Notes: a model not told the origin generated them from the sequence alone. A stretch of 58,639 bases of DNA from Malacoraja senta (GCA_038087875.1 JAXLNO010001824.1:1-58639), one strand, 5' to 3'; counted from the first letter of the stretch, positions 413-58,639 are shown. Program-made: numbers and translations.

Positions 413-727
413 GTGCAGTGTGGGCAAAGTGGGAAGTAAAAGGAGTTGTGGGAAGAGAGATCACAATCGATTATCACTATGCAGCAGAGTACCGCTCACA
501 CACAAAATACTGGTGCCGTGGGAGGAGTCGACCGTGTAGAGTTTTAGTGGAAACAAATGGGCAACACGGACGGAGTGGAAGAGTGTCAATCACAGATAAC
601 CTGGCACGAGGACTATTTACTGTGACTGTGGAGGATCTTCACTCTGAAGATACAGGATGGTACAGCTGTGGAATTACAACATCAGCCGACCATCCAATAT
701 TTAACGTTTTACTCGAAGTATCTGACG
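413..727 (+). CDS. Gene A exon V1, CD300/pIgR-type Ig V domain (B-strand Cys replaced by Tyr)
   Basis: tttcag|GTGCAGTG acceptor, GAC G|gtatgt donor, 315 nt, phase 1-1; KYWCRGRSRPC and DTGWYSC motifs; reads ITIDYHY where B and C read ITIDCHY. Confidence 0.92.
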
Positions 728-760
728 GTATGTTTCGCAGCGAATGACTTGACGTCTCCA

Positions 761-1012
761 GCAGAAAGACAATACAGGATTACAATCGATCCTCTTACAG
801 TGCATAGATACATGAAAAGGAAATTACGTTTAGTGTAAGGTGAATCCAGCAAAGTCCGATCAAGGGTAGTCCGAGGGTCATCAAAGAGATAGATAGTTCC
901 GCACTGCTCTCTGGAAGTGGTAGGATGATTCAGATGCCTGACAACAGCTGTGAAGTAATTGTCCCCGAATCAGGCGGTGTGCGTGTTCACGCTAGTAACG
1001 CTCTCCGGTAAG
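761..1012. repeat. Interspersed repeat fragment, probably a reverse-oriented LINE 3' end
   Basis: Homologous to 22735-23035, 24875-25125, 50590-50890 and 52725-52975; internally deleted versions at about 6665, 30830 and 57735. Confidence 0.55.
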
Positions 1013-1015
1013 GGA

Positions 1016-1917
1016 CCTGGAGGTGGGTGGTGAGTGGGCGAGTGGTGAGTGGGTGAGTGGTTGGGTTAGTGGGCAGATGCATGGCAGATGAAGTTTAATG
1101 TGGATAAATGTGAGTTTATCCACTTTAGTAGCAAAATCAGGAAGGCAGATTATTATCTGAATGTTGTCAGGTTGGGAAAAGGGGAAGTACAAAGAGATCT
1201 GGGGGTCCTTGTTCACCACTCACTGAAAGTAAGCATGCAGGTACAGCAGGCAGTGAAGAAAGCTAGTGGCATGTTGACCTTAATAACAAGAGGAGTTGAG
1301 TACAGGAGCAAAGAGGTCCTTCTGCAGTTGTACATGGCCCCAGTGAGACCACACCTGGATTATTGTTTGCAGTTTTGATCTCCAAATTTGAGGAAGGACC
1401 TTCTTGCTATCGAGGGAGTGCAGTGTATGTTGAGGGAGTGCAACAAGGTTAATTCCCGGGATGGCGGGACTGTCATCTGTTGATTGAATGGTGCGGCTGC
1501 GCTTGTATACTCTGGAATTTAGAAGGATGAGATGGGATCTTATTGAAAAATATAAGATTATTAAGGGATTGGACACGCAAGAGGCAGGAAACATTTTCCC
1601 GATATTAAGAATAATGGATAGGCAATTTACAACGGACATGAGGAAAAACGTTTTCACCCAGAGAGTTGTGAATCTGTGGAATTATCTGCCTCAGAAGGCA
1701 GTGGAGGCCGATTCACTGGATGCATTCAAAAGAGAGTTAGATAGAGCGCTTTGGGCTAGCGGAATCAAGGGGTATGGGGAAAGGCAGGAACGGGGTACTG
1801 ATTGTGGATGATCAGCCATGAACACATTCAATGGCGGTGCTGGCTCGAAGGGCTGAATGGCCTACTCCTGCACCTATTGCCTATGTATCTATGTATCTAT
1901 TTATCTATGTAAGTATC
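1016..1917 (+). mobile_element. CR1/HER1 LINE 3' fragment, V1-V2 intron of A
   Basis: Translates to WADAWQMKFNVDKC..QVQQAVKKA..VRPHLDYC; (TATGTATC)n tail; copies at about 25130-26030 and 52980-53804. Confidence 0.9.
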
Positions 1918-2914: not shown

Positions 2915-3196
2915 CTGCAGTGTGGGGAGAGACGTATGTAAGAGGAGTTGTGGGAAGAGCGATCACAATCTATTGTCACTATGCAGCAGAGTACCGCTCA
3001 CACACAAAATACTGGTGCCGTGTGCAGAGTCGCCAATGTACAGATATGGTGGAAACAATCACAGATAACCCGGCACGAGGAATATTTACTTTGACTGTGG
3101 AGGATCTTCACTCTGGAGATACAGGATGGTACAGGTGTGGAATTACAACATCTAACGGCCGTCCAATGTTAAACGTAGAACTCCAAGTATTTGACG
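2915..3196 (+). CDS. Gene A exon V2, Ig V domain with in-frame 33-nt deletion
   Basis: tttcag|CTGCAGTG acceptor, G|gtacgt donor, 282 nt; lacks the 11 residues NGQ(H/Q)GRSGR(V/M)S present in B and C. Confidence 0.9.
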
Positions 3197-3396: not shown

Positions 3397-4818
3397 AGAA
3401 ACATAGAAACATAGAACATAGGTGCAGGAGGAGGCCATTCGGCCCTTCGAGCCAGCACCGACATTCATTGCGATCATGGCTGATCGTCCCCAATCAATAA
3501 CCTGTGCCTGCCTTCTCCCCATATCCCTTGATTCCACTAGACCCTGGAGCACTATCTGACTCTCTCTTAAATCCATCCAGTGATTTGGCCTCCACTGTCC
3601 TCTGTGGCAGGGAATGCCACTAATTCACAACTCTCTGGCTGAAAACGTTTTTTCTCACCTCAGTCTTAAATGGCCTCCCCTTTATTCTAAGACTGTGGCC
3701 CCTGGTTCTGGACTCGCCCAACATTGGCAACATTTTTCCTGCATCTAGCTTGTCTAGTCCTTTTATAATTTTATGTGTTTCTATAAGATGCCCCCTCATC
3801 CTTCTAAACCCCAGTGAATAAAAACCTAGTCTTTTCAATCTTTACTCATAAGACAGACCCGCCATCCCAGGGATCAATCTCGTGAACCTATGCTCCACTG
3901 CCTCAATCACAAGGATGTCCTTCCACAAATTAGGAGACCAAAACTGTACGCAATACTCCAGATGTGGTCTTTCCAGAGCCCTATACAACTGCAGAAGAAC
4001 CTCTCTACTCCTATACTCTTGTTATTAAGGCCAACATTCCATTAGCTTTCTTCACTGCAAGCCAACTTTCAGTGACCGTTGTACAAGGACACCCAGGTCT
4101 CGCTGCACTCCCCCTTACCTAACCTAACCCAGTTGTGATAATAATCTGCCCCCTTGTTTTTGCCACCAAAGTGGATAACCTCACATTTATCTATATTATA
4201 CTGCCACGCATCTGCCCACTCGGTCAACCTGTCCAGGTCACCCTGCAACCTCCTAACATCCTCTTCACAGTTCACACTGCCATCCAGCATTGTGTCATCC
4301 GCAAACTTGCTAGTGTTGCTCCTAATTCCCTCTTCCAAATCATTAATATATATGGTAAACAGTTGCGGCCCCAACACCGAGTCTTGCGGCACTCCACTCG
4401 CCAATGCCTGCCATTCTGAAAAGGACCCGTTCACTCCTACTCTTTACTTCCTGTCTGCCAACCATTTTCTATCCACGTCAACACCCTACCCCCAATACCA
4501 ATCGCTCTAATTTTAGTCACCAGTCTCTCGGGCGGGTCCTTATCAAAGGCTTTCTGAAAGTCTAGATATACTACATCCACTGGCACCCCTTCATCCATTT
4601 TACATGTCACATCCTCAAAAAAATCCAGAAGATTAGTCAAGCATGATTTTCATAGAAAACATAAATCCATGCTGACTTGGACTAATCCTTTTACTGCTGT
4701 CGAAATGCCCCATTATTACCTCTTTAATAATTGACACCAGCATCTTTCCCACCACCGAAGTCAGGTTAACTGGTCTATAATTCCCCGTTTTTTCTATCGA
4801 TCCTTTTTTGAAAAGTGG
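3397..4818 (-). mobile_element. CR1/HER1 LINE RT fragment, V2-V3 intron of A
   Basis: Minus-strand ORFs with VYLDFQKAFD, GVPQ.SVLGP and KFADDT; (AGAAACAT)n tail. Confidence 0.92.
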
Positions 4819-4989
4819 AATTTAACTTCTCATTCACTTCACTTTTCACTTCAAGTGGAATGCTCAGCACATTTCCCTTCCTCTGAACTGTATGAAATGT
4901 CACCCTGTCAGAAGTTTGCATTCCGACTCAAAATAATAATCCGACAGATCAGTGAGAAACAAGTGTTGCTCGCGGTCTGAATACCCCCA

Positions 4990-6110
4990 GAGTTTTTTAA
5001 AAATCAGTCCCCAGAGCTCAATAGACTGCGATCAGTCCTCCCGGGGTAGGCGATCCCGCTTCCCGCCCCCACCTCAGGGACCAGTCATTCCCTCCCAAAC
5101 CCCGCGCTCTCTCTCTCTCCCTCTGCCCCGTCAATGCGCCTCCATCCCCAGCAGCCACTGTCCACCCACCGCCCGGCAGTCAGCCAACCTCTCCACCCGG
5201 ACATTTCCCCGGTGTTAAGCAGAATAAACTCATCTTTCACCCCATCAGCCGTCGCACACAACACATAATCCTCCAACATTTTCGCCACCTCCAACGGGAT
5301 CCCACTACTAGACACATCTTTCCATCTCCACCGCTTTCTGCTTTCCGAAGAGACCGTAACTCACTGGTCAACGTCCATCCTCCCCCCCAAAAAAAAACCC
5401 ATCCCCTCCCCAAGTACCTTCCCCGACAACTGCAGGAGATAGATCACCTGTCTCGATACCTCCTTCCTCTACTCCGTCCAAGGTCTCCAACAATCTTTTC
5501 GGGTGAGGATTGACTAGCATCTCCTCAAGCTCACCTACTACATCCGCTGTTCCAGGTGTGATCTACTATATATCGGCTAGACCAAGCGCAGACTCGTCGA
5601 TCGTTTCGCTGAATAACTCCGCTCAGTCTGCTTCGGCCGACGCTACTTCCCGATTGCTAAACACTTTAATTCCCCCTCCCATCCCCAAACTCAACTTTCT
5701 GTCCTGGACCTCCTCCACTATCCAACGTAAATAGGAGGAAAAGCACCTGGGCAACTTACAACCCATCGGTTTGAATATTGACTTCTCTAACTTCAAGGAA
5801 CCCTTGCTTTACTCCTGTCCCCATCCCGCCACCATCCTAGCTCTCCAATTAGTTGCACAGTCAAACTGATTTTCTTTCACTTATTGTATGCCTCGTTGTC
5901 ACCGTCCCTTCAGCTCACAATGATCCATTGTCCATTTTCTTTTCACCTTTGATCACTTGTTTTCACACCTTACCTTTCCATTTATCTTCTGTCTCCCTGT
6001 CCCATGATTCTCAGGCTGAAGATGGGTCTCGACACGAAACGTCACCCATTCCTTCTTTCGAGAGATGCTGCCTGCTCCGTTGCGTTACTCCAGAATTTTG
6101 TGTCTATCTT
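4990..6110 (+). mobile_element. Penelope-like element fragment downstream of V2 (A)
   Basis: Degenerate GIY-YIG region (..YIG.TKRRL.DRFAE) and the tail gaagatgggtctcgacacgaaacgtcacccattcc..gagatgctgcctg; copies at about 29165-30275 and 56065-57180. Confidence 0.8.
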
Positions 6111-7240
6111 AAAGGGATCGTAATTCGTTTTCCACAGCAGAGATGGTTAAGTGTGTGTAGACATGTAATGGGGGAAATGGAACTCGGTGCATTGTGGTGA
6201 TGGATCTGAAATCCCACTTGAATATCTAGACAATGTTCGTAGTTTAACCACTGTTGACACATGGTCGAAATACATCCTGATGATAAATGAAAGGCTTAAA
6301 ATAGCGAATGAATTTGAAGCAGATACTGCAAGACACCTGGACCGAAGGCGAGAGGTTCCAACGTCATCAGTAAGTTAATTCTACACTTTTAAAATGTGTT
6401 TACCAAGGAGGTGGAAGTCAGGATTGTGGACTCATTGTGTCAGTTCAAACATTCCCAGCATTTGTCCGGCTCAACTCTGTCGCAAACCCAACAATCCCCC
6501 GGAGTCTGAGACTGAACCACTGTCCTCGCTCTATCCACCCACCCCAACTCTCTCTCCATCCTCTCTCGGATCCGCGGCCCAGTCGTGCTGAATTGTCCAG
6601 GGCGAGCCGGGGTCATTGGGAATAAAACCTGTCCCAGATGAGCAGCGGGTCATTGGGCTCACAATTCAGTTTAGTTTATTGTCACGAGTACCGAGGTACA
6701 GTGAATCTGGCGGTGTGTGTTTTCACGCTAGTAGCGCTCTCCAGCAAGGGACCCGCTTTATTGTAACCCGTCCGTACTCTGTCCTCAGGCAGGGCGTTGT
6801 AAACACAGTGGCTGCGGTGAATTTCTAAACACGGGTCCGGCCCAGTGTCGGTTGAGAGATGAATGCTGGCAGCGCCGACACTGAAATAGCAAAGTGAGGT
6901 ATTTCTGTAGGGTGAGAGGCCGGGCACCGCCTGGGATTGTTGAAAGGCAGCTCCTGCAACATTGCCGCGCTCCCTCAGTACCGCACTGCGATCCCAGCCC
7001 AGTTTCTGCGCAGGGATCTGGAGTGGGAAGTGAACCCTAATTGTACTGACCCGGGGACAGAACACTGACACAACTTGTACAATAACAGCACTGCCTGCAC
7101 TTCAGACCGGAGACATTGGCCGTGAAGCAAAATGACACATCGTGGAACGATTATGTTTTTCATGTAATCTTCAAAATGTATATATTTCCATTAAATAGTT
7201 CATTTGCTCTCCATCTGAAAGTTTTTCCCCTCCCTTTCAG

Positions 7241-7555
7241 CTGCAGTGTGGGGAGAGAGGAATTTAACAGGAGTTGTGGGAAGAGCCATCACAATCGATT
7301 GTCACTATGCAGCAGAGTACCGCTCACAGGCTAAATACTGGTGCCGTGGGCAGAGTCGCCAATGTACAGATATGGTGGAAACAAATGGGCAACACGGACG
7401 GAGTGGAAGAGTGTCAATCACCGATATACCGGCACTAAGAATATTTACTATGACTGTGGAAGATCTTCACTCTGGAGATACAGGATGGTACAGCTGTCGA
7501 ATCACAGCACCTGCCGACCATTCAATGTTTAACGTATATGTCCAAGTATCTGACG
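7241..7555 (+). CDS. Gene A exon V3, Ig V domain
   Basis: ctttcag|CTGCAG acceptor, G|gtacga donor, 315 nt open; DC, KYWC-x6-C and DTGWYSC motifs; NLT sequon. Confidence 0.92.
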
Positions 7556-7914
7556 GTACGATTCGCAGCGATTGACTTAATGTCTCCACTGAAAAGCCTG
7601 ATCCATGTTTTCTCCGGGAAGGGTCAGGGCAGCACCGATATCTCGAGGCTCCGCAGCAGTGCAGAGGCCTGCGGGGAGCGGGCGAGGGTCGGGAAACTCC
7701 ACTCATGTTTGCTCTCACCCAGTGCGGGTTCTGTCCCATTGAGCGGCCACCCACTTCAAGACACTCAACACATTTCCCTGCCTCTGAATTGTATGAAATA
7801 TCACCCTGTCAGAGGTTTGCATTCCGACTCAAACTAATAATCCGACAGATCAGTGAGAAACAAGTGTTGCTCGCCGTCTGAATACCCGGAGAATCATAAA
7901 CAGGGAATCAGTCC

Positions 7915-9969: not shown

Positions 9970-10290
9970 AACCCATGTCTGCTCCTGTGCTCAGTTATCT
10001 GTCAGCAGCAAATGCCTCACGTCTTGGAGGCTCAGTGTCAGTGTCCTGTGAGTCTCTCCGTGGATCCCTTCCCATCCATTACACATGGTTTGAGAAGGAC
10101 GAGCATTGGGTTTCTACGATCTTGAAAGGCAATCAACTGGATCTGAGTTGTGAAATCCTCAGAGGTGAACACCTTCGATATTACTGCACAGCCGCAAATA
10201 ATCGTGGGACAAAATCCAGTGAAATAGTCAAGGTGAAAGTCTTCAAAGGAGCAGGAACGTGCAGTTATGTGACAGAAATGAACAATGCAG
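9970..10290 (+). CDS. Gene A exon C2a, C2-type Ig domain
   Basis: ttcccacag|AACCCATG acceptor, GCAG|gtgagt donor, 321 nt, phase 1-1; EPMSAPVL..VSC..YTW..YYCTAANNRG. Confidence 0.9.
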
Positions 10291-11542: not shown

Positions 11543-11854
11543 GTGCACTGTGGGCAGAGAGCGAAGTACGAGGGGTTGTGGGAAGAGCGATCTCAATCGA
11601 TTGTCACTATGCAGCAGTGTACCGCTCACACACAAAATACTGGTGCCCTGGGACAAGTCGCCAGTGTACACATATAGTGGAAACAAATGGGAAACAAGGA
11701 CAGAGCTGAAGAGTGTCAATCACAGATAACCCGGCACGAGGAATATTTACTGTGACTGTGGAGGATCTTCACTCTGGAGATACAGGATGGTACAGATGTG
11801 GAATTATTGCACCTGGCGAACCAACATTTAAAGAACATCTCCAAGTATCTGAAG
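11543..11854 (+). pseudogene. Gene A exon V4, Ig V domain with premature stop
   Basis: tttcag|GTGCACTG acceptor, GAAG|gtaggt donor, 312 nt; TGA at 11707-11709 where B has GGA. Confidence 0.9.
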
Positions 11855-13021: not shown

Positions 13022-13342
13022 ACCCCGTGTCTGTTCCTGTGCTTGGATTTCTGTCACCAGCCAATGTCTCCTGTCTCGGGGGCTCAGTGACAGTGTCCTG
13101 TGAGTCGGTCAGTGGATCCCTTCCCATTAGCTACACATGGTATGAAAAGACCCCATCTGTGGATTCAAAGATCTCAGACCAAAATGCCTTGGATCTGCAT
13201 TGTCAATCATTCAAACACCAGCACCATCAATATTATTGCACAGCCTCCAATAATAATGGAACTAAATCCAGTGAAATGGTCAACGTGTCCATCTCCAGCA
13301 GTGACGTGCCCTGCAGTTTTCTAGTGAAAATCAACGGCACTG
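13022..13342 (+). CDS. Gene A exon C2b, C2-type Ig domain
   Basis: ttcccacag|ACCCCGTG acceptor, ACTG|gtaagt donor, 321 nt; DPVSVPVL..VSC..YTW..YYCTASNNNG. Confidence 0.92.
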
Positions 13343-14645: not shown

Positions 14646-14694
14646 GTCATGAATATTCTTGTGAAAATTCGATAACATCCAATTACTCTGCAAG
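14646..14694 (+). CDS. Gene A linker exon (GHEYSCENSITSNYSA)
   Basis: ttgttccaacag| acceptor with pyrimidine tract, AG|gtaaac donor, 49 nt, phase 1 to 2, which bridges C2b (phase 1) to the TM exon (phase 2); open in A and B. Confidence 0.7.
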
Positions 14695-17006: not shown

Positions 17007-17097
17007 TTACATCTCATGGAATGTGGGGCGCTGGTTGTTCTTTCTCCTGCTTGTGCTCTGGAGTATCTCAACCGCGGTGTTCACAAGAAGCTCTAAG
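17007..17097 (+). CDS. Gene A transmembrane exon with Arg (SYISWNVGRWLFFLLLVLWSISTAVFTRSSK)
   Basis: ttgccctttgcccag| acceptor, AAG|gtaggt donor, 91 nt, phase 2 to 0; hydrophobic stretch followed by basic residues. Confidence 0.85.
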
Positions 17098-17715: not shown

Positions 17716-17763
17716 AGACGCGATGAATCAGAACCTCGCCACTCGACACACGAATTAGAATGA
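17716..17763 (+). CDS. Gene A terminal cytoplasmic exon (RRDESEPRHSTHELE*)
   Basis: tgtcttttgcag| acceptor, phase 0 matching the TM donor, TGA at 17761-17763; same peptide in B. Confidence 0.7.
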   Translation, partial: RRDESEPRHSTHELE

Positions 17764-18880: not shown

Positions 18881-18882
18881 TC

Positions 18883-22168: not shown

Positions 22169-22205
22169 ATGTGGATTCCCATTCTTCTCATCTCCTCGCT
22201 GCCGG
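22169..22205 (+). CDS. Gene B signal-peptide exon (MWIPILLISSLP-G)
   Basis: aaaacaATG with A at -3, hydrophobic 12-mer, CCG G|gtgagt phase-1 donor; joins V1 as MWIPILLISSLPGAVWA. Confidence 0.88.
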
Positions 22206-24525: not shown

Positions 24526-24840
24526 GTGCAGTGTGGGCAAAGTGGGAAGTAAAAGGAGTTGTGGGAAGAGAGATCACAATCGATTGTCACTATGCAGCAG
24601 AGTACCGCTCACACACAAAATACTGGTGCCGTGGGAGGAGTCGATCGTGTAGAGTTTTAGTGGAAACAAATGGGCAACACGGACGGAGTGGAAGAGTGTC
24701 AATCACAGATAACCCGGCTCGAGGAATATTTACTGTGACTGTGGAGGATCTTCACTCTGAAGATACAGGATGGTACAGCTGTGGAATTTCAACATCAGCC
24801 GACCATCCAATATTTAACGTTTTACTCGAAGTATCTGACG
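24526..24840 (+). CDS. Gene B exon V1
   Basis: 315 nt, open, all four Cys and the core Trp present, GT-AG sites intact. Confidence 0.93.
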
Positions 24841-27025: not shown

Positions 27026-27340
27026 CTGCAGTGTGGGGAGAGACGTATGTAAGAGGAGTTGTGGCAAGAGCGATCACAATCGATTGCCACTATGCAGCAG
27101 AGTACCGCTCACACACAAAATACTGGTGCCGTGTGCAGAGTCGCCAATGTACGGATGTGGTGGAAACAAATGGGCAACAAGGACGGAGTGGAAGAGTGTC
27201 AATCACCGATAACCCGGCACGAGGAATATTTACTTTGACTGTGGAGGATCTTCACTCTGGAGATACAGGATGGTACAGGTGTGGAATTACTACATCTAAC
27301 GGCCGTCCAATGTTAAACGTAGAACTCGAAGTATCTGACG
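27026..27340 (+). CDS. Gene B exon V2
   Basis: 315 nt, open, motifs and splice sites intact. Confidence 0.93.
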
Positions 27341-31394: not shown

Positions 31395-31709
31395 CTGCAG
31401 TATGGGGAGAGAGGAATGTAACAGGTGTTGTGGGAAGAGCGATCACAATCGATTGTCACTATGCAGCAGATTACCGCTCAAACACAAAATACTGGTGCCG
31501 TGGGTGGAGTCGCCAATGTACAGATATGGTGGAAACAAATGGGCAACACGGACGGAGTGGAAGAGTGTCAATCACAGATATATCGGCACTAAGAATATTT
31601 ACTGTGACTGTGGAAGATCTTCACTCTGGAGATACAGGATGGTACAGGTGTGGAATCACAGCATCCACCGAACATCCATTGTTTCCCGTATATCTCCAGG
31701 TATCTGACG
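31395..31709 (+). CDS. Gene B exon V3 (divergent)
   Basis: 315 nt, open, tttcag| and |gtacgt; 16 aa differences from V3 of gene A. Confidence 0.93.
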
Positions 31710-34133: not shown

Positions 34134-34453
34134 AAACCATGTCTGCTCCTGTGCTCAGTTATCTGTCAGCAGCAAATTCCTCACGTCTTGGAGGCTCAGT
34201 GTCATTGTCCTGTGAGTCTCTCCGTGGATCCCTTCCCATCCATTACACATGGTTTGAGAAAACGAGCATTGGGTTTCTACGATCTTGAAAGGCAATCAAC
34301 TGGATCTGAGTTGTGAAATCCTCAGAGGTGAACACCTTCGATATTACTGCACAGCCGCAAATAATCGTGAGACAAAATCCAGTGAAATAGTCAAGGTGAA
34401 AGTCTTCAAAGGAGCAGGAACGTGCAGTTATGTGACAGAAATGAACAGTGCAG
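34134..34453 (+). pseudogene. Gene B exon C2a with -1 frameshift
   Basis: 320 nt versus 321 in A; GAGAAAACG versus GAGAAGGACG gives TGA at 34286-34288; splice sites intact. Confidence 0.88.
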
Positions 34454-36172: not shown

Positions 36173-36484
36173 GTGCACTGTGGGCAGAGAGCGAAGTACG
36201 AGGGGTTGTGGGAAGAGCGATCTCAATCGATTGTCACTATGCAGCAGTGTACCGCTCACACACAAAATGCAGGTGCCCTGGGACAAGTCGCCAATGTACA
36301 CATATAGTGGAAACAAATGGGAAACATGGACAGAGCGGAAGAGTGTCAATCACAGATAACCCGGCACGAGGAATATTTACTGTGACTGTGGAGGATCTTC
36401 ACTCTGGAGTTACAGGATGGTACAGATGTGGAATTATTACACCTGGCGAACCAACATTTAAAGTACATCTCCAAGTATCTGAAG
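36173..36484 (+). CDS. Gene B exon V4, open but degenerate
   Basis: 312 nt, open; KYWC changed to KCRC and GDTG to GVTG. Confidence 0.85.
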
Positions 36485-37673: not shown

Positions 37674-37994
37674 ACCCCGTGTCTGTTCCTGTGCTTGGAT
37701 TTCTGTCACCAGCCAATGTCTCCTGTCTCGGGGGCTCAGTGACAGTGTCATGTGAGTCGGTCAGCGGATCACCGCCCATTAGCTACAGCTGGTATGAAAA
37801 GACCCCATCTGTGGATTCAAAGATCTCAGACCAAAATGCCCTGGATCTGCATTGTCAATCATTCAAACACCAGCACCATCAATATTATTGCACAGCCTCC
37901 AATAATAATGGAACAAAATCCAGTGAAATGGTCAACGTGTCCATCTCCAGCAGTGACGTGCCCTGCAGTTTTCTAGTGAAAATCAACGGCACTG
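37674..37994 (+). CDS. Gene B exon C2b
   Basis: 321 nt, open, only 2 aa differences from A. Confidence 0.92.
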
Positions 37995-39261: not shown

Positions 39262-39310
39262 GTCATGAATATTCTTGTGAAAATTCGATAACATCCAATA
39301 ACTCTGCAAG
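39262..39310 (+). CDS. Gene B linker exon (GHEYSCENSITSNNSA)
   Basis: 49 nt, same splice sites as A. Confidence 0.7.
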
Positions 39311-40606: not shown

Positions 40607-43360
40607 TAATTTTATGATAAACTTATGATAAACTAATACCAAGATTACAAAAAATGTACCAATACGCTTTTAAAAAACGAATACTACCTGATACATTAGC
40701 GGAATCAACGATTACATTAATACCTAAGAAAAATAAAGATTTAGAAGAACCTGGTTCATATAGAGCTATAGCATTGTTAAACACAGATCAAAAAATATTA
40801 GCGAAAACATTAGCTAGAAGATTAAGTAAATACATTAGTAAATTAATAAACCCAGATCAGACAGGGTTTATCCCTAAGACGAGATACTCTTCTAATAATA
40901 TGAGACGTCTACTCAACATAATGCACTCACACAAATCTGAAGATCAAGAATTATCAATTATTTCGCTGGATGCTGAAAAAGCATTTGATCAAGTAGAATG
41001 GAATTATATGGATAAAGTATTACAAAAATTTCAACTGGGAGAGAATTTTATTTTATGGATTAAGTTACTATATAACAAACCTACAGCTAGAATACTAACT
41101 AATAACATATTATCCTCGAAATTTCAACTATCAAGGGGAAATAGACAAGGATGCTCATTATCACCACAGCTGTTTGCTCTCATTATTGAACCGCTAGCAG
41201 AAAAAATTAGAATACACCCTGATATTCATGGATATAATACTAAAGACTCATATAATAAAATATCTTTACACGCGGATGATATATTACTGTATATTACAAA
41301 ACCACAAATCACTATACCAAATATATTAAATTTAATTGAAGACTTTGGATCTTTTTCTGGATATAGAATAAATTGGAATAAAAGTGAAATTATGTCAATA
41401 AAACCGAAAGATTCAACACATCTTTTAAAATTCCCTTTTAAAATAGCTACAGAAAAATTTAAATATTTGGGAATCGAAATTACCAGAACATATCAAGGTA
41501 TGTTCAGGGCAAATTTTGACCCCCTACTTAATAAATTTAATACACTAATTAAATTCTGGAAAACGCTCCCGATGTCTTTAATAGGTCGAATAAACGCAAT
41601 AAAAATGATCTTTTTACCACAAATTTTATACCTATTTCAATCAATTCCTATATACTTACCTAAGAAGTTTTTAAAAAAACTCGACTCAGATATCACTAAT
41701 TTTATATGGGACTATAAATCACATAGAATACAAAAAACTCATCTGAATAAACCTAAAGTATTGGGGGGTTTAGCACTACCTAATTTTATGTATTATTATT
41801 GGTCAGTAAATATTAAAAACATGATTCAACTGATGGATAACTCCGCCCAGCAAGTAGACTGGATTGTAATGGAGAAAGAGGATTGCTCCTCTACAAACAT
41901 TGGAGCGATCCTCCTCTCTCCAATGAAACTGAATAACATAAATTATTATAAGAACCCCATTATTCATAGTACAATCCGTATTTGGAAACAAATAAAACAA
42001 AATTTAAAATTAAGAAATGTATCACTTTTATTACCTATAGTCAATAATCCTTCGTTTAGTCCTTCTATTATAGATAAAGCTTATACACAATGGGATAGAC
42101 TAGGAATTCAAACGCTTGGTGACTTGTATGAAACTGGAAAATTACTTTCATTTCAACAATTACAAATAAAATATAAACTCGGAAATAATCAATATTTTAA
42201 ATATTTTCAAATATGCGACTATTTGAAAAAATATACAAAAGATCATTATAATAACCCAGTAGATGTATTGGACGAGGCAATGCAGATAAAAGCGGAATCA
42301 GCAAACTTAATATCATATTTGTATAATATTATTTTAAATGTACAAATACCACCTACGGAGGGTATCAGAAGAGACTGGGAACAAGAGTTAGCTATTAAAA
42401 TTTCAAAGGAAAGTTGGAATGAATACTTATTAAACGTGCATAAATGCTCGATTAATGTAAGACACACTTTAATACAATTTAAAATTTTACATAGATTATA
42501 TTATTCGAAAACTAAAATTCATAAAATTTTCCCAAACGTATCATCTATTTGTGATAAATGTCAATCCCAAGAAGCTACTATAGCGCACTCATTCGTCTTC
42601 TGTACAAAAATTCAAAAATTTTGGAATGAAATTTTTGAAATCTTTACAAAGTTATTTAAAACAAGACTGATACCCAAAGCAGAATGGATTATCTTCGGAA
42701 TAACGGAAGATGATCCAGAACTAAATGTGTTTCAAAAGAAATTAATGGACTATGGGTTAATAACTGGAAAAAAGCTAATTCTAAAATTTTGGAAGAAGGC
42801 TCCAATACCAACTATAAATATGTGGATTTCAAATATGTTTGAAACATTACACCTAGAAGAGATAAGACTCCTCCTAGCAGGTAAACCAGATCACTTCCAC
42901 CTGACGTGGTCTGCATTTATAGAATTATTACAAACATAGGGTGCAAAATTACTTTAAAAAATATAAAAAAATTGAGGTCAGGTAAGGGGGGATGATAGTT
43001 GAAGAGTTGGTATGTCCTATTTACGTAATGCTTAAAAAAACATTTGTTTTTCTTTTTTTTTTTTTTTTTCCTCTCTCTCTTTCTCTTTTTTTTCCTAGGG
43101 CCTATTTCTTAACTCTTTTTCTTTTGTTTTTAATTTCGCTCTTATAGGGTCTTCGTCCTTTTTTGTTGTTACATTTTCTACACTTTTCTACACTTTCACT
43201 TTTTCCTTCACTTTCTTCTTTCTTTCAATCTTTTCCTTTTCTAGTGTAAAAAAATAAATAAAGGGAGTACATTAATTGTAAGAAGATACAAATGACGAGT
43301 ATTAATGTATGTGGTTGTAATGTAATGTACTTCTAATAAATAAAAATAAAAAAAATAATA
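40607..43360 (+). mobile_element. B-specific young 5'-truncated L1 with a 761-aa uninterrupted ORF2 fragment (40654-42939)
   Basis: RT motifs PGSYRAIALL, QTGF, SLDAEKAFD, RQGCSLSP and HADD; C-terminal C-x2-C..H..C; AATAAA and A tail; 14-bp TSD AAAAACATTCATAA; empty site in A near 15989-16002. Confidence 0.95.
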
Positions 43361-44369
43361 AAAAACATTCATAAATAACTGACGCTCCCTTACACATTGA
43401 ATCTTGAAAACATTGTTTTTTTAAATTATCCCTGAATATTCCATCATAATACAGTCATGAAAGTGGGAACACTTTGTTATTTATCTTGTTACAATTGAAA
43501 TAGGTCTGGCTTTCTATCACACTCTTGCGATAGGAAATAAGAATATTAATAAAAGGCACGCCGTTATGAGCGAACCTTTAACCGATTTTTCGAACACACA
43601 CCATCCACACACCTACCGCGTTAATCCAAGTAATATCGAGGGGGCGAGATTAAGCATTAACATTTTTAATTTATTTTATTACTTGGCCTCATCCGTTTCC
43701 ATATTTATTGTCCCACCTCCCTTCCACCATTAGAATTGATCCCTTTTAATTAATCTATCCATATGGATTTTATTATAATCTCCTTGCAGCTGCAGTTTCT
43801 TTCTTCCAGGGTATTACACTGTTCTTTGTATCATTCACACATCCACAGTTTCCCTTTCCCGTGACTCCCAGTCTGAAGAAGGGTCTCGACCCGAAACGTC
43901 ACACGTGGGGTCATGCAGCAAAGATTCGGTGGCGCAGAAAGTGAGAAAACAGCCTTGAATTCAACCGAATACAGCGAACTGTGTTAACTGACGCTCCCTT
44001 ACACATTGAACCTTGAAACCTCTCCCGCTGTGTTTCTCCAGCATTGTGTGTCTATCTACTCTGTAGTCACTGAATTCACTGCTCCATCTACTGACTTATT
44101 TCTCTGTCTTCTCCGAATCCATTTAACCGTCTAATCTCTGATACCCAGTCTTATAGATATGCTCCAGCAATGAGGTCAGTAATTGGTGATCATAGGTTGC
44201 CCCCCCCCCAGTCCAACACCCGTTCTTTATCCAAGATGATCTCCATTGGCTCTACTGCTTCGCCCCGCTCCACTTCACTAAGATTATGAAGCAAATAACA
44301 GGTAAATGTTTCAAAGATAAATCGTCTCGTTTCCTCCCATTGATTCTGTATCTCTTGCCCTTTGCCCAG

Positions 44370-44460
44370 TTACATCTCATGGAAAGTGGGGCGCTGGCTG
44401 TTCTTTCTCCTGCTTGCGATCTGGAGTATCTCAACCGCGGTGTTCACAAGAAGCTCTAAG
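44370..44460 (+). CDS. Gene B transmembrane exon (SYISWKVGRWLFFLLLAIWSISTAVFTRSSK)
   Basis: gcccag| acceptor, AAG|gtaagt consensus donor; Arg kept and Lys gained. Confidence 0.85.
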
Positions 44461-44702
44461 GTAAGTTTTATTAGCATCATGTTCATAAATTATAGGAGCA
44501 GAATTGGTCCAATCAGCCCATTATATATAATCCGCCCCCAATCACGACTATTCTAGCCTTCGCTCCCGATCCATCCTCCTGCCTTCACCCCATAACCCTT
44601 GACATCCTTATTTATAAGAAATATGAAAATCTCCGGCTTAAAAATATCAATTGATTTGGATATGTACTAAAATACTGAACTCAGCGGGACAGGCAGTATC
44701 TC

Positions 44703-47700
44703 TGTCCCGCTAATAGGTAGCAAGGTGAAAAGTAAAAGAGGCAGGCAGACAAATCCAGGGCAAAAATCAAAAAGAGCCACTTTTCAACATAATTGTATAA
44801 GGGGTAAGACCGTTGTAAAAACAAGCCTGAAGGCTTTGTGTCTTAATGCAAGGAGCATTCGTAATAAGGTGGATGAGTTGAACGTGCAGATAGCAATTAA
44901 TGATTATGATATAGTTGGGATCACGGAGACATGGCTCCAGGGTGACCAAGGCTGGGAGCTGAACATCCAGGGATATTCAATATTCAGGAGGGATAGAGAG
45001 AAAGGAAAAGGAGGTGGGGTAGCGTTGCTGGTTAGAGAGGAGAGTAACGCAGTGGAAAGGAAGGACATTAGCTTGGAGGATGTGGAATCGGTATGGGTAG
45101 AGCTGCGAAACACTGAGGGCAGAAAAGGCTGGTGGGTGTTGTGTACAGGCCACCTAGCAGTAGTAGTGAAGTTGGGGATGGCATCAAACAGGAAATTAGA
45201 AATGCGTGCAACAAAGGCAAAACAGTTATAATGGGTGACTTCAATCTACATATAGATTGGGTGAATCAAATTGGCAGGGGTGCTGAGGAAGAGGATTTCT
45301 TGGAATGTATGCGGGATAGTTATCTAAACCAACATGTAGAGGCACCAACGAGAGAGCAGGCTATTCTAGACTCGGTATTGAGTAATGAGGAAGGGTTAGT
45401 TAGCAGTCTTGTTGTGCATGCCCCCTTGGGCAAGAGTGACCATAATATGGTTGAGTTCTTCATTAGGATGGAGAGTGACATTGTTAATTCAGAAACAACG
45501 GTTCTGAACTTAAAGAAAGGTAACTTTGAGGGTATGAGACATGAATTGGCCAAGATTGACTGGCAATTAGTTCTAAAAGGGTTGACGGTGGATATGCAAT
45601 GGAAGGCATTTAAAGACTGCATGGATGAACTACAAAAATTGTTCATCCCAGTTTGGCAAAAGAATAAATCAGGGAAGGTAGTGCATCCGTGGATAACAAG
45701 GGAAATCAGGGATAGTATCAAAGCAAAAGATGATGCGTACAAATTAGCCAGAAAAAGCAGCATACCAGAGGACTGGGAGAAATTCAGAGACCAGCAGAGG
45801 AGGACAAAGGGCTTAATTAGGAAACGGAAAATAGATTATGAAAGGAAACTGGCAGGGAACATAAAAACTGACTGCAAAGGTTTTTATAGATATGTGAAGA
45901 GAAAGAGATTAGTTAAAACAAATGTAGGTCCCTTGCAGTCAGAAACAGATGAATTGATCATGGGGAACAAGGATATGGCGGACCAATTGAATAACTACTT
46001 TGGTTCCGTCTTCACTAAGACATAAATAATCTGCCGGAAATAGCAGGGGGCCGCGGGTCAAAGGAGATGGAGGAACTGAGTGAAATCCAGGTTAGTCGGG
46101 AAGTGGTGTTAGGTAAATTGAATGGATTAAAGGCCGATAAATCACCAGGGCCAGATAGGCTGCATCCCAGAGTACTTAAGGAAGTAGCTCCAGAAATAGT
46201 GGATGCATTAGTGATAATATTTCAAAACTCTTTAGATTCTGGAGTAGTTCCTGAGTATTGGAGGGTAGCAAACGTAACCCCACTTTTTAAGAAGGGAGGG
46301 AGAGAGAAAACGGGGAATTACAGACCATTTAGTGTAACATCGGTAGTGGGGAAACTGCTAGAGTCTGTTATTAAAGATGGGATAGCAGCACATTTGGAAA
46401 GTGGTGAAATCATTGGACAAAGTCAGCATGGATTTACGAAAGGTAAATCGTGTCTGACGAATCTTATAGAATTTTTCGAGGATGTAACTAGTAGAGTGGA
46501 TAGGGGAGAACCAGCGGATGTGTTGTATCTGGACTTTCAGAAGGCTTTCGACAAGGTACCACATAAGAGATTAGGATACAAACTTAAATCACACGGTATT
46601 GGGGGTTCAGTACTGATGTGGATAGAGAACTGGCTGGCAAACAGGAAGCAAAGAGTAGGAGTAAACGGGTCCTTTTCACAATGGCAGGCAGTGACTAGTG
46701 GGGTACCGCAAGGCTCAGTGCTGGGACCCCAGCTATTTACAATTTATATTAATGATCTGGACGAGGGAATTGAAAGCAACATCTCCAAGTTTGCGGATGA
46801 CACTAAGCTGGGGGGCAGTGTTAGATGTGAGGAGGATGCTAGGAGACTGCAAGGTGACTTGGATAGGCTGGGTGAGTGGGCAAATGTTTGGCAGATGCAG
46901 TATAATGTGGATAAATGTGAGGTTATCCACTTTGTTGGCAAAAACCGGAAGGCAGACTATTATCTAAATGGTGGCCGATTAGGAAATGGGGAGATGCAGC
47001 GAGACCTGGGTGTCATGGTACACCAGTCATTGAAAGTAGGCATGCAGGTGCAGCAGGCAGTGAATAAAGCGAATGGTATGTTGGCCTTCATAGCAAGAGT
47101 ATTTGAGTATAGGAGCAGGGAGGTTCTACTGCAGTTGTACAGGGTCTTGGTGAGACCACACCTGGAGTATTGCGTACAGTTTTGGTCTCCAAATCTGAGG
47201 AAGGACATTATAGCCATAGAGGGAGTGCAGAGAAGGTTCACCAGACTGATTCCTGGGATGTCGGGACTTTCATATGAAGAAAGACTGGATAGACGGCTTA
47301 TATTCGCTAGAATTTAGGAGATTGAGAGGGGATCTCATAGAAACGTACAAAATTCTTATGGGGTTGGACAGGCTAGATGCAGGAAAATTGTTCCCGATGT
47401 TGGGGAAGTCCAGGACAAGGGGTCACAGCTTAAGGATAAGGGGGAAATCCTTTAAGACCGAGATGAGGAAACACTTTTTTACACAGAGAGTGGTGAATCT
47501 CTGGAACTCTCTGCCACAGAGGGTAGTTGAGGCCAGTTCATTGGCTATATTTAAGAGGGAGTTAGATGTGGCCCTTGTGGTTAAGGGGATCAGGGGGTAT
47601 GGAGAGAAGGCAGGTACGGGATACTGAGTTGGATGATCAGCCATGTTCATATTGAATGGCGGTGCAGGCTCGAAGGGCCGAATGGCCTACTCCTGCACAT

Positions 47701-47725
47701 ATTTTCTATGTATCTATGTAGCTAT
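44703..47725 (+). mobile_element. B-specific CR1/HER1 LINE with near-complete ORF2 (APE endonuclease and RT), frameshifted
   Basis: LNARSIRNK, GDFN, SDH, LDFQKAFD and FADD motifs over four ORF pieces; (CTATGTAT)n tail; 7-bp TSD GTATCTC; empty site in A near 17336-17342. Confidence 0.95.
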
Positions 47726-48104
47726 GTATCTCCGGAGTGAATTGATTTGGCCTCCGCAGCCTCCTATGGTAATGAAATCCATTGATTCACCACCCTCTGC
47801 CCAAAACAATCAATTCTCTTCGCCGAATGTATCCAAACGGTTTTCATTAATGCTTTCAAATATCCTGTCCATTGATAGAAACAAAAATCGTGCACGTTTT
47901 CATAACCTGAAGTTAAACCAAATCACTATGTAGATGATATCATGTGGTTTTGTCAGGTTGTACGTGTGCTGGGTGGATTTCTGTGCGCGGTGTGGATTCG
48001 TTGGGGTCCATCTTCCAGACAGCCATGTGTTGGGGGTGGTCGGGTCAAATAAAGCGTGGTTCCCACTGTCAGTGAGTCTGATGACTTCACATTGTCTTTT
48101 GCAG

Positions 48105-48152
48105 AGACGCGATGAATCAGAACCTCGCCACTCGACACACGAATTAGAATGA
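48105..48152 (+). CDS. Gene B terminal cytoplasmic exon (RRDESEPRHSTHELE*)
   Basis: ttttgcag| acceptor, same peptide as A. Confidence 0.7.
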   Translation, partial: RRDESEPRHSTHELE

Positions 48153-50023: not shown

Positions 50024-50060
50024 ATGTGGATTCCCATTCTTCTCATCTCCTCGCTGCCGG
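50024..50060 (+). CDS. Gene C signal-peptide exon (MWIPILLISSLP-G)
   Basis: Same sequence as the gene B leader, |gtgagt donor. Confidence 0.88.
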
Positions 50061-52306: not shown

Positions 52307-52375
52307 CAAAATGTATCAATTACCATTAAACAGTTAATTTGCTCTCCATCTGAAAGTTTCTCCGCTCAGTTTCAG

Positions 52376-52690
52376 GTGCAGTGTGGGCAAAGTGGGAAGT
52401 AAAAGGAGTTGTGGGAAGAGAGATCACAATCGATTGTCACTATGCAGCAGAGTACCGCTCACACACAAAATACTGGTGCCGTGGGAGGAGTCGACCGTGT
52501 AGAGTTTTAGTGGAAACAAATGGGCAACACGGACGGAGTGGAAGAGTGTCAATCACAGATAACCCGGCACGAGGAATATTTACTGTGACTGTGGAGGATC
52601 TTCACTCTGAAGATACAGGATGGTACAGCTGTGGAATTACAACATCAGCCGACCATCCAATATTTAACGTTTTACTCGAAGTATCTGACG
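52376..52690 (+). CDS. Gene C exon V1
   Basis: 315 nt, open, motifs and splice sites intact. Confidence 0.93.
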
Positions 52691-53920: not shown

Positions 53921-54235
53921 CTGCAGTGTGGGGAGAGACGTATGTAAGAGGAGTTGTGGGAAGAGCGATCACAATCTATTGTCAATATGAAGCAGAGTAT
54001 CGCTCACACACAAAATACTGGTGCCGTGTGCAGAATCGCCAATGTACAGATATGGTGGAAACAAATGGGCAACACGGACGGAGTGGAAGAATGTCAATCA
54101 CAGATAACTCGGCACGAGGAATATTTACTTTGACTGTGGAGGATCTTCACTCTGGAGATACAGGATGGTACAGGTGTGGAATTACAACATCTAACGGCCG
54201 TTCAATGTTAAACGTAGAACTCCAAGTATCTGACG
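53921..54235 (+). CDS. Gene C exon V2
   Basis: 315 nt, open, motifs and splice sites intact. Confidence 0.93.
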
Positions 54236-54435: not shown

Positions 54436-55875
54436 AGAAACATAGAAACATAGAAAATAGGTGCAGGAGGAGGCCATTCGGCCCTTCGAGCCAGCACCAC
54501 CATTCATTGCGATCATGGCTGATCGTCCCCAATCAATAACCTGTGCCTGCCTTCTCCCCATATCCCTTGATTCCACTAGACCCTGGAGCTCTATCTGACT
54601 CTCTCTTAAATCCATCCAGTGATTTGGCCTCCACTGCCCTCTGTGGCAGGGAATGCACAAATTCACAACACTCTGGGTGAAAACGTTTTTTCTCACCTCA
54701 GTCTTAAATGGCCTCCCCTTTATTCTAAGACTGTGGCCCCTGGATCTGGACTCGCCCAACATTGGGAACATTTTTCCTGCATCTAGCTTGTCCAGTCCTT
54801 TTATAATGTTATGTGTTTCTATAAGATCCCCCCTCATCCTTCTAAACTCCAGCGAATACAAGCCTAGTCTTTTCAATCTTTCCTCATAAGACAGTCCCGC
54901 CATCCCAGGGATCAATCTCGTGAACCTATGCTGCACTGCCTCAATCACAAGGATGTCCTTCCACAAATTAGGAGACCAAAACTGTACGCAATACTCCAGA
55001 TGTGGTCTTTCCAGAGCCCTATACAACTGCAGAAGAACCTCTGTACTCCTATACTGAAATTCTCTTGTTATGAAGGCCAACATTCCATTAGCTTTCTTCA
55101 CTGCCTGCTGTACCTGCAAGCCAACTTTCAGTGACCGGTGTACAAGGACACCCAGGTCTCGCTGCGCCTCCCCCTTACCTAACCTAACCCCGTTGTGATA
55201 ATAATCTGCCCCCTTGTTTTTGCCACCAAAGTGGATAACCTCACATTTATCTATATTATACTGCCACGCATCTGCCCACTCACTCAACCTGTCCTGGTCA
55301 TCCTGCAACCTGCTAACATCCTCTTCATAGTTCACACTGCCATCCAGCTTTGTGTCATCCGCAAACTTGCTAGTGTTGCTCCTAATTCCCTCTTCCAAAT
55401 CATTAATATATATGGTAAACAGTTGCGGCCCCAACACCGAGCCTTGCGGCACTCCATTCGCCACTGCCTGCCATTCTGAAAAGAACCCGTTCACTCCTAC
55501 TCTTTACTTCCTGTCTGCCAACCAATCTTCTATCCACGTCAACACCCTACCCCCAATACCATGCGCTCTAATTGTAGTCACCAGTCTCCCGGGCGGGTCT
55601 TTATCAAAGGCTTTCTGAAAGTCTAGATACACTACATGCACTGTCTCCCCTTCATCCATTTTACTTGTCACATCCTCAAAATAATCCAGAAGATTAGTCA
55701 AGCATGATTTTCCTTTCATAAATCCATGCTGACTTGGACTAATACTTTTACTGCTATCCAAATGCCCCATTATTACCTCTTTAATAATTGACACCAGCAT
55801 CTTTCCCACCACCGAAGTCAGGCTAACTGGTCTGTAATTCCCCGTTTTCTCTCTCGCTCCTTTTTTGAAAAGTGG
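54436..55875 (-). mobile_element. CR1/HER1 RT fragment, V2-V3 intron of C
   Basis: 366-aa minus ORF 54394-55494 plus 55504-55812. Confidence 0.92.
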
Positions 55876-58310
55876 AATTTAACTTCTCTTTCACTTCACT
55901 TTTCACTTCAAGTGGAATGCTCAGCACATTTCCCTTCCTCTGAACTGTATGAAATGTCACCCTGTCAGAAGTTTGCATTCCGACTCAAAATAATAATCCG
56001 ACAGATCAGTGAGAAACAAGTGTTGCTCGCGGTCTGAATACCCCGAGAGTTTTTAAAAAATCAGTCCCCAGAGCTCAATAGACTGCGATCAGTCCTCCCG
56101 GGGTAGGCCATCCCGCTTCCCGCCCCCACCTCAGGGACCAGTCATTCCCTCCCAAACCCCGCGCTCTCTCTCTCTCCCTCTGCCCGTCAATGCGCCCCCA
56201 TCCCCAGCAGCCACTGTCCACCCACCGCCCGGCAGTCAGCCAACCTCTCCACCCGGACATTTCCCCGGTGTTAAGCAGAATAAACTCATCTTTCACCCCA
56301 TCAGCCGTCGCACACAACACATAATCCTCCAACATTTTCGCCACCTGCAACGGGATCCCACTACTAGACACATCTTTCCATCTCCACCGCTTTCGGCTTT
56401 CCGAAGAGACCGTTCCTTCCGTAACTCCCTGGTCAACGTCCATCCTTCCCCCCAAAAAAAACCCCATCCCCTCTCCAAGTACCTTCCCCGACAACTGCAG
56501 GAGATAGATCACCTGTCTCGATACCTCCTTCCTCTACTCCGTCCCAAGGTCTCCAACAATCTTTTCGGGTGAGGATTGACTAGCATCTCCTCCAAGCTCA
56601 CCTACTACATCCGCTGTTCCAGGTGTGAACTACTATATATCGGCTAGACCAAGCGCAGACTTGTCGATCGTTTCGCTGAATAACTCCGCTCAGTCTGCTT
56701 CGGCCGACGCTACTTCCCGATTGCTAAACACTTTAATTCCCCCTCCCATCCCCAAACTCAACTTTCTGTCCTGGACCTCCTCCACTATCCAAAGTAAATA
56801 GGAGGAAAAGCACCTGGGAAACTTACAACCCATCGGTTTGAATATTGACTTCTCTAACTTCAAGGAACCCTTTCTTTACTCCCGTCCCCATCCCGCCACC
56901 ATCCTAGCTCTCCAGTTAGTTGCACAGTCAAACTGATTTTATTTTACTTATTGTATGCCTCGTTGTCACCTTCCCTTCAGCTCACAATGATCCATTGTCC
57001 ATTTTCTTTTCACCTTTGATCACTTGTTTTCACACCTTACCTGTCCATTTATCTTCTGTCTCCCTGTCCCATGATTCTCAGGCTGAAGATGGGTCTCGAC
57101 ACGAAACGTCACCCATTCCTTCTTTCGAGAGATGCTGCCTGCTCCGTTGCGTTACTCCAGAATTTTGTGTCTATCTTAAAGGGATCGTAAATTCGTTTTC
57201 CACAGCAGAGATGGTTAAGTATGTGTAGACATGTAAAGGGGGAAATGGAACTCAGTGCATTGTGGTGATGGATCTGAAATCACACTTGAATATCTACACA
57301 ATGTTCGTAGTTTAACCACTGTTGACACATGGTCGAATTGCATCCTGATGATAAATGAAAGGCTTTAAATAGCGAATGAATTTGAAGCGGATACTGCAAG
57401 ACACCTGGACCGAAGGCGAGAGGTTCCAACGTCATCTGGAAGTTAATTCTACACTTTTAAAAATGTGTTTACCAAGGAGGTGGAAGTCAGGATTGTGGAC
57501 TCATTGTGTCAGTTCAAACATTCCCAGCATTTGTCCGGCTCAACTCTGTCGCAAACCCAACAATTCCCCGGAGTCTGAGACTGAACCACTGTCCTCGCTC
57601 TATACACCCACCCCAACTCTCTCTCCATCATCTCTCCAATCCGCGGCCCAGCCGTGCTGAATTTTCCAGGGCGAGCCGGGGTCATTGGGAATAAAACCTG
57701 TCCCAGATGAGCAGCGGGACATTGGGCTCACAATTCAGTTTAGTTTATTGTCACGAGTACCGAGGTACAGTGAATCTGGCGGTGTGTGTTTTCACGCTAG
57801 TAGCGCTCTCCAGCAAGGGACCCGCTTTATTTTAACCGGTCCGTACTCTGTCCTCAGTCAGGGCGTTGTAAAGACAGTGGCTGCGGTGAATTTCTAAACA
57901 CGGGTCCGGCCCAGTGTCGGTTGAGAGATGAATGCTGGCAGCGCCGACACTGAAATAGCAAAGTGGGGGTATTTCTGTGGGTTGAGAGGCCGGGCACCGC
58001 CTGGGATTGTTGAAAGGCAGCTCCTGCAACACTGCCGCGCTCCCTCAGTACCGCACTGCGATCCCAGCCCAGTTTCTGCGCAGGGATCTGGAGTGGGAAG
58101 TGAACCCTAATGGTACTGACCCGGGGACAGAACACTGACACAACTGGTACAATAACAGCACTGCCTGCACTTCAGACCGGAGACATTGGCCGTGAAGCAA
58201 AATGACACATCATGGAACGATTATGTTTTTCATGTAATCTTCAAAATGTATATATTTCCATTAAACAGTTCATTTGCTCTCCATCTGAAAGTTTTTCCCC
58301 TCCCTTTCAG

Positions 58311-58626
58311 CTGCAGTGTGGGGAGAGAGGAATTTAACAGGAGTTGTGGGAAGAGCCATCACAATCGATTGTCACTATGCAGCAGAGTTCCGCTCACAGG
58401 CTAAATACTGGTGCCGTGGGCAGAGTCGCCAATGTACAGATATGGTGGAAACAAATGGGCAACACGGACGGAGTGGAAGAGTGTCAATCACCGATATACC
58501 GGCACTAAGAATATTTACTATGACTGTGGAAGATCTTCACTCTGGAGATACAGGATGGTACAGCTGTGGAATCACAGCACCTGCCGACCATTTCAATGTT
58601 TAACGTATATCTCCAAGTATCTGACG
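58311..58626 (+). pseudogene. Gene C exon V3 with +1 frameshift near the 3' end (possible sequencing error)
   Basis: 316 nt; GACCATTTCAATG versus GACCATTCAATG in A gives TAA at 58601-58603. Confidence 0.7.
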
Positions 58627-58639
58627 GTACGTTTCGCAG

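Follow-up and report, generated by a model that had tools for sequence, protein, structure and literature searches.

The window analysed here is the entire unplaced contig C1824 of the Malacoraja senta assembly (GCA_038087875.1, JAXLNO010001824.1:1-58639), which comprises 58,639 bp without runs of N. It is very probably a piece of a skate array of modular domain immune-type receptor (MDIR) genes, the units of which encode predicted type I membrane proteins with six immunoglobulin (Ig) domains and represent the activating half of a paired receptor system. Reading frames and splice sites across the window give a gene of ten exons in the order leader, V1, V2, V3, C2a, V4, C2b, Cys linker, Arg-bearing transmembrane (TM) segment and tail. 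The resulting V-V-V-C2-V-C2 order is real at the genome level, with intact open reading frames (ORFs) of 707 amino acids (aa) on scaffold C5 of the same assembly.

The leader exon (37 nt) reads MWIPILLISSLP(G). It is followed by V1, V2 and V3 with 315 nt each, C2a with 321 nt, V4 with 312 nt and C2b with 321 nt. The linker exon (49 nt, GHEYSCENSITSNYSA) supplies a membrane-proximal Cys, the TM exon has 91 nt (SYISWNVGRWLFFLLLVLWSISTAVFTRSSK), and the tail exon encodes 15 aa, RRDESEPRHSTHELE, and then a stop. AG/GT splice sites are present on all mapped exons, except for the leader, where an acceptor is not needed, and the tail, where the stop codon closes the exon. Every Ig exon is of phase 1-1, while the linker is entered in phase 1 and left in phase 2; it is because of this shift that the TM exon is read in the frame giving a hydrophobic span. 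The Arg is placed near the outer edge of that span within a W-x-V-G-R-W motif, of which GRW is kept in eight proteins of batoid species, and the cytoplasmic tail of about 20 aa (TRSSK + RRDESEPRHSTHELE) carries no signalling motif. Splicing joins the ten exons into an ORF of 2124 nt. The domain order had already been proposed in a first-pass annotation of the contig, and exon mapping, splice sites and Pfam bear it out; the length estimated there, about 707 aa, equals that of the spliced product exactly, and the KYWC-x6-C motif that it described is seen in V1 to V3. The position at which that annotation began, 413, is exactly the first base of the V1 exon of the first gene copy. We rejected the idea that V4 and C2b form a separate gene, as the stretch from C2a to V4 contains neither a leader nor a terminal exon, and the cDNA-derived MDIR3 and MDIR5 proteins join the same V-C2-V-C2 modules.

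Self-BLAST divides the window into three head-to-tail units of about 24 kb each, in agreement with the three tandem paralogues recognized at first: copy A (344-24456), copy B (24457-52306) and copy C (52307 to the contig end). Identity among the units is 95-98% in exons and introns alike, and the divergence of 2-5% is evenly spread rather than clustered. Copy B is longer than the other units because of two insertions of long interspersed nuclear elements (LINEs) at 40609-43361 and 44702-47726. The best protein matches of the window exons come from Amblyraja, Rhinoraja, Leucoraja and Rostroraja, and the genome had rightly been called a probable skate genome.

The whole 1.94-Gb assembly (6182 contigs) was searched for related units. 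With C2a as the query, at least 80 C2-like exon matches were obtained, mostly at 1.10-1.75 Mb of C5 and also on contigs C1219, C1977 and C4994. A region of 200 kb (C5:1,440,001-1,640,000) was annotated with the window's exons; the array beyond it was covered by the C2a query only. Three genes in this region have all ten exons open with canonical splice sites (Table 1), and the window exons are 95-100% identical to the exons of an intact C5 paralogue. At least two other six-Ig genes on C5 possess an alternative C-terminal end. Their linker differs (LEYSCETSKRTNYSS, LEYSCE), their TM segment (RITYIVASGV..LLILIIAFFWY) has no charge inside the hydrophobic span, and their tail exons contain ITYAVV, VLYADV and TIYASV, which fit the patterns of immunoreceptor tyrosine-based inhibitory or switch motifs (ITIM/ITSM). 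Six Ig exons and the ITIM-type linker are also present in a third gene, which starts at 1619721 and extends past the annotated region. At the nucleotide level the ectodomain exons of the ITIM-type genes are 91-100% identical to those of the window for V1-V4 and C2a, and about 94% identical for C2b. The genes at 1500271 (Arg TM) and 1522827 (ITIM tail) have V1 exons at least 98.8% identical to window V1 and match the six-exon order. Genes with an Arg TM and genes with an ITIM tail are interleaved on C5, and the window carries the Arg-TM type only. Since one six-Ig ectodomain is shared between Arg-TM ends and ITIM ends, the locus reads, on its sequence, as a paired activating/inhibitory array with near-identical ectodomains.

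Birth-and-death duplication, as suggested by the first-pass annotation, is well supported by the presence of at least 16 near-identical units, by a frameshifted copy that occurs at five places and by relic fragments. The latter (C5:1557631-1558199 and 1615845-1616412) are situated downstream of each ITIM-type gene and consist of a partial V4-like exon without acceptor and then a tail exon, RRDESEAGHSTHELQ; they look like the remains of a deleted activating gene. Pairwise pN/pS among the paralogues amounts to 1.5 for V1, 1.2 for C2a, 1.1 for V4, 0.7 for V2, 0.6 for V3 and 0.2 for C2b, values that come from small counts and non-independent copies and on which we base no claim of selection.

Each of the four V exons is recognized by Pfam as V-set (E 4e-8 to 2e-14), and the C2 exons are matched by Ig_C17orf99, Ig_2 or Ig_3. 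In comparison with the PDB, V1 aligns over its full length with domain D1 of pIgR (whole-chain E 1.3e-60), and the alignment spans the HT(K/R)KYWC-x6-C segment that bears the second disulfide. The next matches are CD300f/CLM-1 (E 5e-20), CD300a, NKp44, TREM2 and FcmuR. For C2a the best match is FCRL5 (E 1.7e-38, five stretches), followed by FCRL4 and CD22. These alignments indicate that the predicted receptor combines pIgR/CD300-type V modules with FCRL-type C2 modules.

The receptor does not fit into any of these three families as they stand. With mammalian and teleost pIgR it shares D1-like V domains, including the second C-C' disulfide (WC-x6-C) and the full-length D1 alignment. However, pIgR consists of V-type domains only, has a long sorting tail with transcytosis signals and an uncharged TM segment, and is single-copy in mammals; we rejected membership because two FCRL-type C2 domains are interposed in the ectodomain, the tail has about 20 aa and the TM segment contains Arg. 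The CD300/CMRF35 family agrees in the type of V domain (E 5e-20 to CLM-1) and in the arrangement of activating (charged TM) and inhibitory (ITIM) pairs in a tandem cluster, but its proteins have a single V domain, which has two disulfides and is carried on a stalk, and no C2, compared to six Ig domains here. Likewise, the C2 exons match the Ig domains of FCRL5, and a modular multi-domain ectodomain and ITIM-type tails on inhibitory relatives are features of FCRL proteins as well. On the other hand, FCRL ectodomains are built solely of FCRL-type C2/I domains and are without pIgR/CD300-type V domains, whereas four of the six domains are V-set in the present case.

Relatives were gathered by an exhaustive HMMER search with V1 and by word-index searches, and the domains of 265 of these relatives were classified with hidden Markov models built from the window's own exons. 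They are elasmobranch proteins named “polymeric immunoglobulin receptor-like”, “Fc receptor-like protein 5” or “CMRF35-like”, and among them are MDIR2, MDIR3 and MDIR5 of Rostroraja (Raja) eglanteria, deposited as V-C2, V-V-C2-V-C2 and V-C2-V-C2 proteins, respectively. Aligned with the intact C5 protein, MDIR5 (501 aa, UniProt A0S0F..) matches residues 213-707 with 77% identity (497 aa), and MDIR3 (701 aa, ITIM tail) matches residues 107-679 with 73% identity (577 aa). The likeness to MDIR5 includes the V-C2-V-C2 core, a near-identical Cys linker (GHEYSCENPITSSYSA), the Arg TM (SYISWKVGRWLLF...) and the short tail (KRDESEPRHSAHELQ), but MDIR5 has four Ig domains and the gene described here has two additional N-terminal V domains. 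MDIR3 and the Amblyraja radiata “pIgR-like” XP models (699-774 aa) share a V-V-C2-V-C2 ectodomain that is 73-77% identical, and the linker, TM and tail type of MDIR3 is common to the ITIM-bearing C5 genes. In contrast, these proteins are one V domain shorter, and the copies in the window end in an Arg TM and a short tail instead of an ITIM tail. The gene can thus be described, on these alignments, as MDIR5 plus two N-terminal V domains, or as the MDIR3 ectodomain plus one V domain on the stem of MDIR5. We assign the genes to the MDIR family on account of their close similarity to MDIR cDNAs, their V and C2 modules of variable number and the multigene organization with charged-TM and ITIM members.

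The layouts found among the 265 relatives are V-C, V-C-V-C (the commonest of those containing C2), V-V-C-V-C, (V-C)3-6 and, in one stingray protein, V-V-V-C. V-V-V-C2-V-C2 was not found among the deposited MDIR2, MDIR3 and MDIR5 or the 265 database relatives. The architecture had been proposed to be of MDIR type, distinct and possibly undescribed. The assignment to the MDIR family stands, and the exact order is missing from the proteins compared, but it does not constitute a distinct class, being MDIR5 with two N-terminal V exons added. What we report is therefore an unlisted arrangement of domains within a known family; it does not amount to a new kind of receptor. Cannon and colleagues (Immunogenetics 58:362) are said to have described the MDIR family in 2006, including the modular number of domains, the existence of activating as well as inhibitory forms and the resemblance to pIgR, CD300, TREM and FcR. 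Their abstract reportedly gives one to six Ig domains for MDIRs, and the six-domain form may be described already.

In a tree of V domains, V4 falls into a well-supported clade of membrane-proximal V domains that is common to all skates, while V1, V2 and V3 each group with a different orthologous V domain of Amblyraja. Because each has its own partner there, the three V types must be older than Malacoraja senta. The V1, V2 and V3 exons together with their upstream introns are 86-91% identical to one another by self-BLAST, and the V-V-V head very probably originated from duplication of a V exon along with its upstream intron. The phase 1-1 nature of all Ig exons explains how the MDIR family gains and loses them freely. 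The locus underlying one RefSeq model of Amblyraja radiata contains two smaller genes, V-V-C2-linker-TM-tail and V-C2-TM-tail, so that domain number is set there gene by gene, by exon gain and loss. The model XP_032898097.1 (402 aa; Amblyraja radiata CM021389.1, 33368766-33416552) seems to join exons from two neighbouring MDIR genes. Skipping of the 49-nt linker exon leaves its TM exon in the wrong frame (VTSHGKWGAGCSFSCL), and the same ending is seen in two Leucoraja models.

How would such a receptor work? Paired receptors of the Ig superfamily, such as KIR, LILR, PIR and CD300, and Arg-TM receptors of the FcalphaRI/OSCAR type offer a basis for analogy. The ectodomain of both forms would bind one shared ligand. 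To reach the surface and signal, the Arg-TM form would pair with an adaptor that has an acidic TM segment and an immunoreceptor tyrosine-based activation motif (ITAM). It would be opposed by the ITIM form through the recruitment of phosphatases. The linker Cys may form a disulfide-linked dimer. The type of the V domains suggests polymeric Ig or phospholipid as a candidate ligand, and the type of the C2 domains suggests Ig. A role as a multivalent sensor of lipid, Ig or pathogens, put forward in the first-pass annotation, is a candidate function.

The length of 707 aa had been given on the proviso that the copies were intact. The exon layout is complete in copies elsewhere, on C5, but all three copies in the window are lesioned or truncated (Table 1). 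Copy A is without a leader exon because the contig begins just upstream of V1, and the in-frame TGA in its V4 is unique among the loci that cover V4 (12 of 30 genomic loci compared). In copy B, the frameshift in C2a is seen at five places of the assembly, among them scaffold C5 and contigs C1977 and C4994, and is therefore real and not a read error. The change of KYWC to KCRC in its V4, by which the invariant Trp is lost, is found on C5 as well. The insertion in V3 of copy C is absent from the 99.2%-identical C5 counterpart, whose V3 is open, and may be a contig-end error. As assembled, the window copies are not working genes: A and B are pseudogenes or, at most, lose their damaged exons by skipping, and copy C corresponds to an intact C5 gene, of which it is a near-allele in truncated form.

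Table 1. Exons of gene copies A to C and inserted elements in the window (positions on contig C1824), and six-Ig genes on scaffold C5.
Feature	Position	Strand	Description
Copy A V1	413..727	+	pIgR/CD300-type V; canonical first Cys replaced by Tyr (IDYHY)
Copy A V2	2915..3196	+	33-bp in-frame deletion (11 aa) removing NGQxGRSGRVS
Copy A V3	7241..7555	+	open
Copy A C2a	9970..10290	+	FCRL5-like C2; open
Copy A V4	11543..11854	+	in-frame TGA (GQS*RVS)
Copy A C2b	13022..13342	+	open
Copy A linker	14646..14694	+	Cys-containing, GHEYSCENSITSNYSA
Copy A TM	17007..17097	+	SYISWNVGRWLFFLLLVLWSISTAVFTRSSK, Arg near outer edge
Copy A tail	17716..17763	+	RRDESEPRHSTHELE + stop
Copy B leader	22169..22205	+	MWIPILLISSLP(G)
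Copy B V1	24526..24840	+	open
Copy B V2	27026..27340	+	open
Copy B V3	31395..31709	+	open
Copy B C2a	34134..34453	+	1-bp deletion, frameshift with 6 stops downstream
Copy B V4	36173..36484	+	open, but KYWC changed to KCRC
Copy B C2b	37674..37994	+	open
Copy B linker	39262..39310	+	linker exon
First LINE insertion	40609..43361	+	AT-rich (31% GC); copy B linker-TM intron; not in copy A
Reverse transcriptase (RT) ORF in first LINE	40654-42939	+	open, 761 aa; RVT_1 and weak sub-threshold zf-RVT match
Copy B TM	44370..44460	+	SYISWKVGRWLFFLLLAIWSISTAVFTRSSK
Second LINE insertion	44702..47726	+	copy B TM-tail intron; endonuclease and RT in broken ORFs
Copy B tail	48105..48152	+	tail exon
Copy C leader	50024..50060	+	open
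Copy C V1	52376..52690	+	open
Copy C V2	53921..54235	+	open
Copy C V3	58311..58626	+	1-bp insertion ~50 bp from contig end; remainder of gene beyond contig
Intact 707-aa gene	C5:1477318-1495906		ten exons open, canonical splice sites
Intact 707-aa gene	C5:1500271-1518462		ten exons open, canonical splice sites
Intact 707-aa gene	C5:1561582-1580260		ten exons open, canonical splice sites
Six-Ig gene, ITIM-type tail	C5:1522827-1550774		alternative C-terminal end
Six-Ig gene, ITIM-type tail	C5:1584624-1609274		alternative C-terminal end

Several observations weigh against our view of the window as a piece of an activating array. All three copies in it are damaged or incomplete, and relative to C5 it is a mosaic: over 31 kb (27669-58639) it is 99.2% identical to C5:1454963-1485929, whereas the first ~27 kb best match other C5 units. 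Either the contig comes from a haplotype that differs in structure, or its assembly is chimeric in part. It could even be an assembly by-product, formed as a haplotig or by chimeric collapse of the array on C5, in which case some of the lesions and the order of the copies would not exist in the animal. Such an origin, which we consider possible but not probable, would agree with the mosaic match, with the window being a whole unplaced contig of 58.6 kb and with a frameshift in copy C that lies ~50 bp from the contig end and is missing from its C5 counterpart. It would not explain why both the C2a frameshift and the KCRC change of copy B are present on C5 too, the former again on C1977 and C4994, and it is at odds with the lack of N runs and with an inter-copy divergence that is even and unclustered. 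The symmetric phase 1-1 Ig exons, moreover, would permit exon skipping. The six-exon layout might then be a map of the gene rather than of the protein, with splicing giving MDIR5-like and MDIR3-like receptors and the damaged exons of A and B being skipped. Skipping of any Ig exon keeps the frame, the cDNA-derived relatives that we found have only 2, 4 or 5 Ig domains, and the RefSeq models in other skates that skip the linker and read the TM exon as VTSHGKWGAGCSFSCL imply that models or splicing are variable. Nevertheless, we hold this to be unlikely: three C5 paralogues keep ten exons open and canonical over 2124 nt, which is unexpected if V1 or V2 is unused, and the smaller forms in Amblyraja come from genes with fewer exons, not from skipping.

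A further difficulty concerns the adaptor with which the Arg-TM form would pair. A scan of the genome gave a single strong TCR_zetazeta-type exon (C5:19864556-19864642, plus strand, 58 bits), and the FcR gamma chain has been reported missing from cartilaginous fish (PMC4016189). The exon is located on the scaffold of the MDIR array, ~18 Mb away from it, and could belong to a CD3-zeta or FcR-gamma-like adaptor. The alignment of V1, which is best with pIgR D1 and includes HT(K/R)KYWC, the match of C2a to FCRL5 and the RefSeq names of the relatives (pIgR-like or FCRL5-like) also raise the question whether these genes are truly orthologous, or functionally equivalent, to pIgR or Fc receptors, which bind or transport Ig, and not regulators in the manner of CD300 or LILR. 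This seems very unlikely to us, as the ectodomain mixes V and C2 domains, unlike that of pIgR, the tail of ~20 aa has no sorting signals, and dozens of copies with paired Arg-TM and ITIM forms follow the pattern of regulatory paired receptors.

Could the six-domain MDIRs, in their Arg-TM and ITIM forms, be the missing IgM/IgW receptors of cartilaginous fish, with the triple V head providing multivalent binding of polymeric Ig? Surveys and reviews up to 2026 describe cartilaginous fish as being without pIgR, FcRL and FcR gamma chain (PMC4016189; PMC13337447). One of them (PMC13337447, citing PMC4016189) asks how these animals perform Fc-dependent functions, and reviews ask how opsonisation and the secretion of antibody take place in them. 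A paired array built from pIgR-type V and FCRL-type C2 domains is an obvious candidate for the binding of skate IgM/IgW, although the full proposal is a long shot. The family has been known since 2006 and is already annotated in related species, and the six-domain layout is another arrangement of known modules. In addition, the array clearly illustrates how exon shuffling and birth-and-death evolution have acted in a jawed vertebrate of an early branch.

The introns of the window contain a number of repeats. The first LINE in copy B (Table 1) is shared with the 99%-identical C5 counterpart and missing from copy A; given this absence, it may be a young element. The second LINE represents another family, with Exo_endo_phos_2 and RVT_1 domains in broken ORFs, which is present at 44702-47726 on the plus strand and at 27545-28971, 54440-55875 and 3401-4818 on the minus strand. 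Its copies are 77-79% identical mutually and are spread over several introns in all three units. A dispersed intronic repeat of ~1.3 kb (4863-6132, 7764-9054, 29016-30296, 31918-33218 and 55920-57200; 81-82% identical) contains a Pro-rich ORF that matches nothing in Pfam; each gene unit has two copies, one behind V2 and the other behind V3. Finally, the intron between C2b and linker harbors a GC-rich simple repeat (14100-14530 and 38760-39130) that reads as poly-Pro on one strand and as runs of Gly, Arg and Glu on the other.

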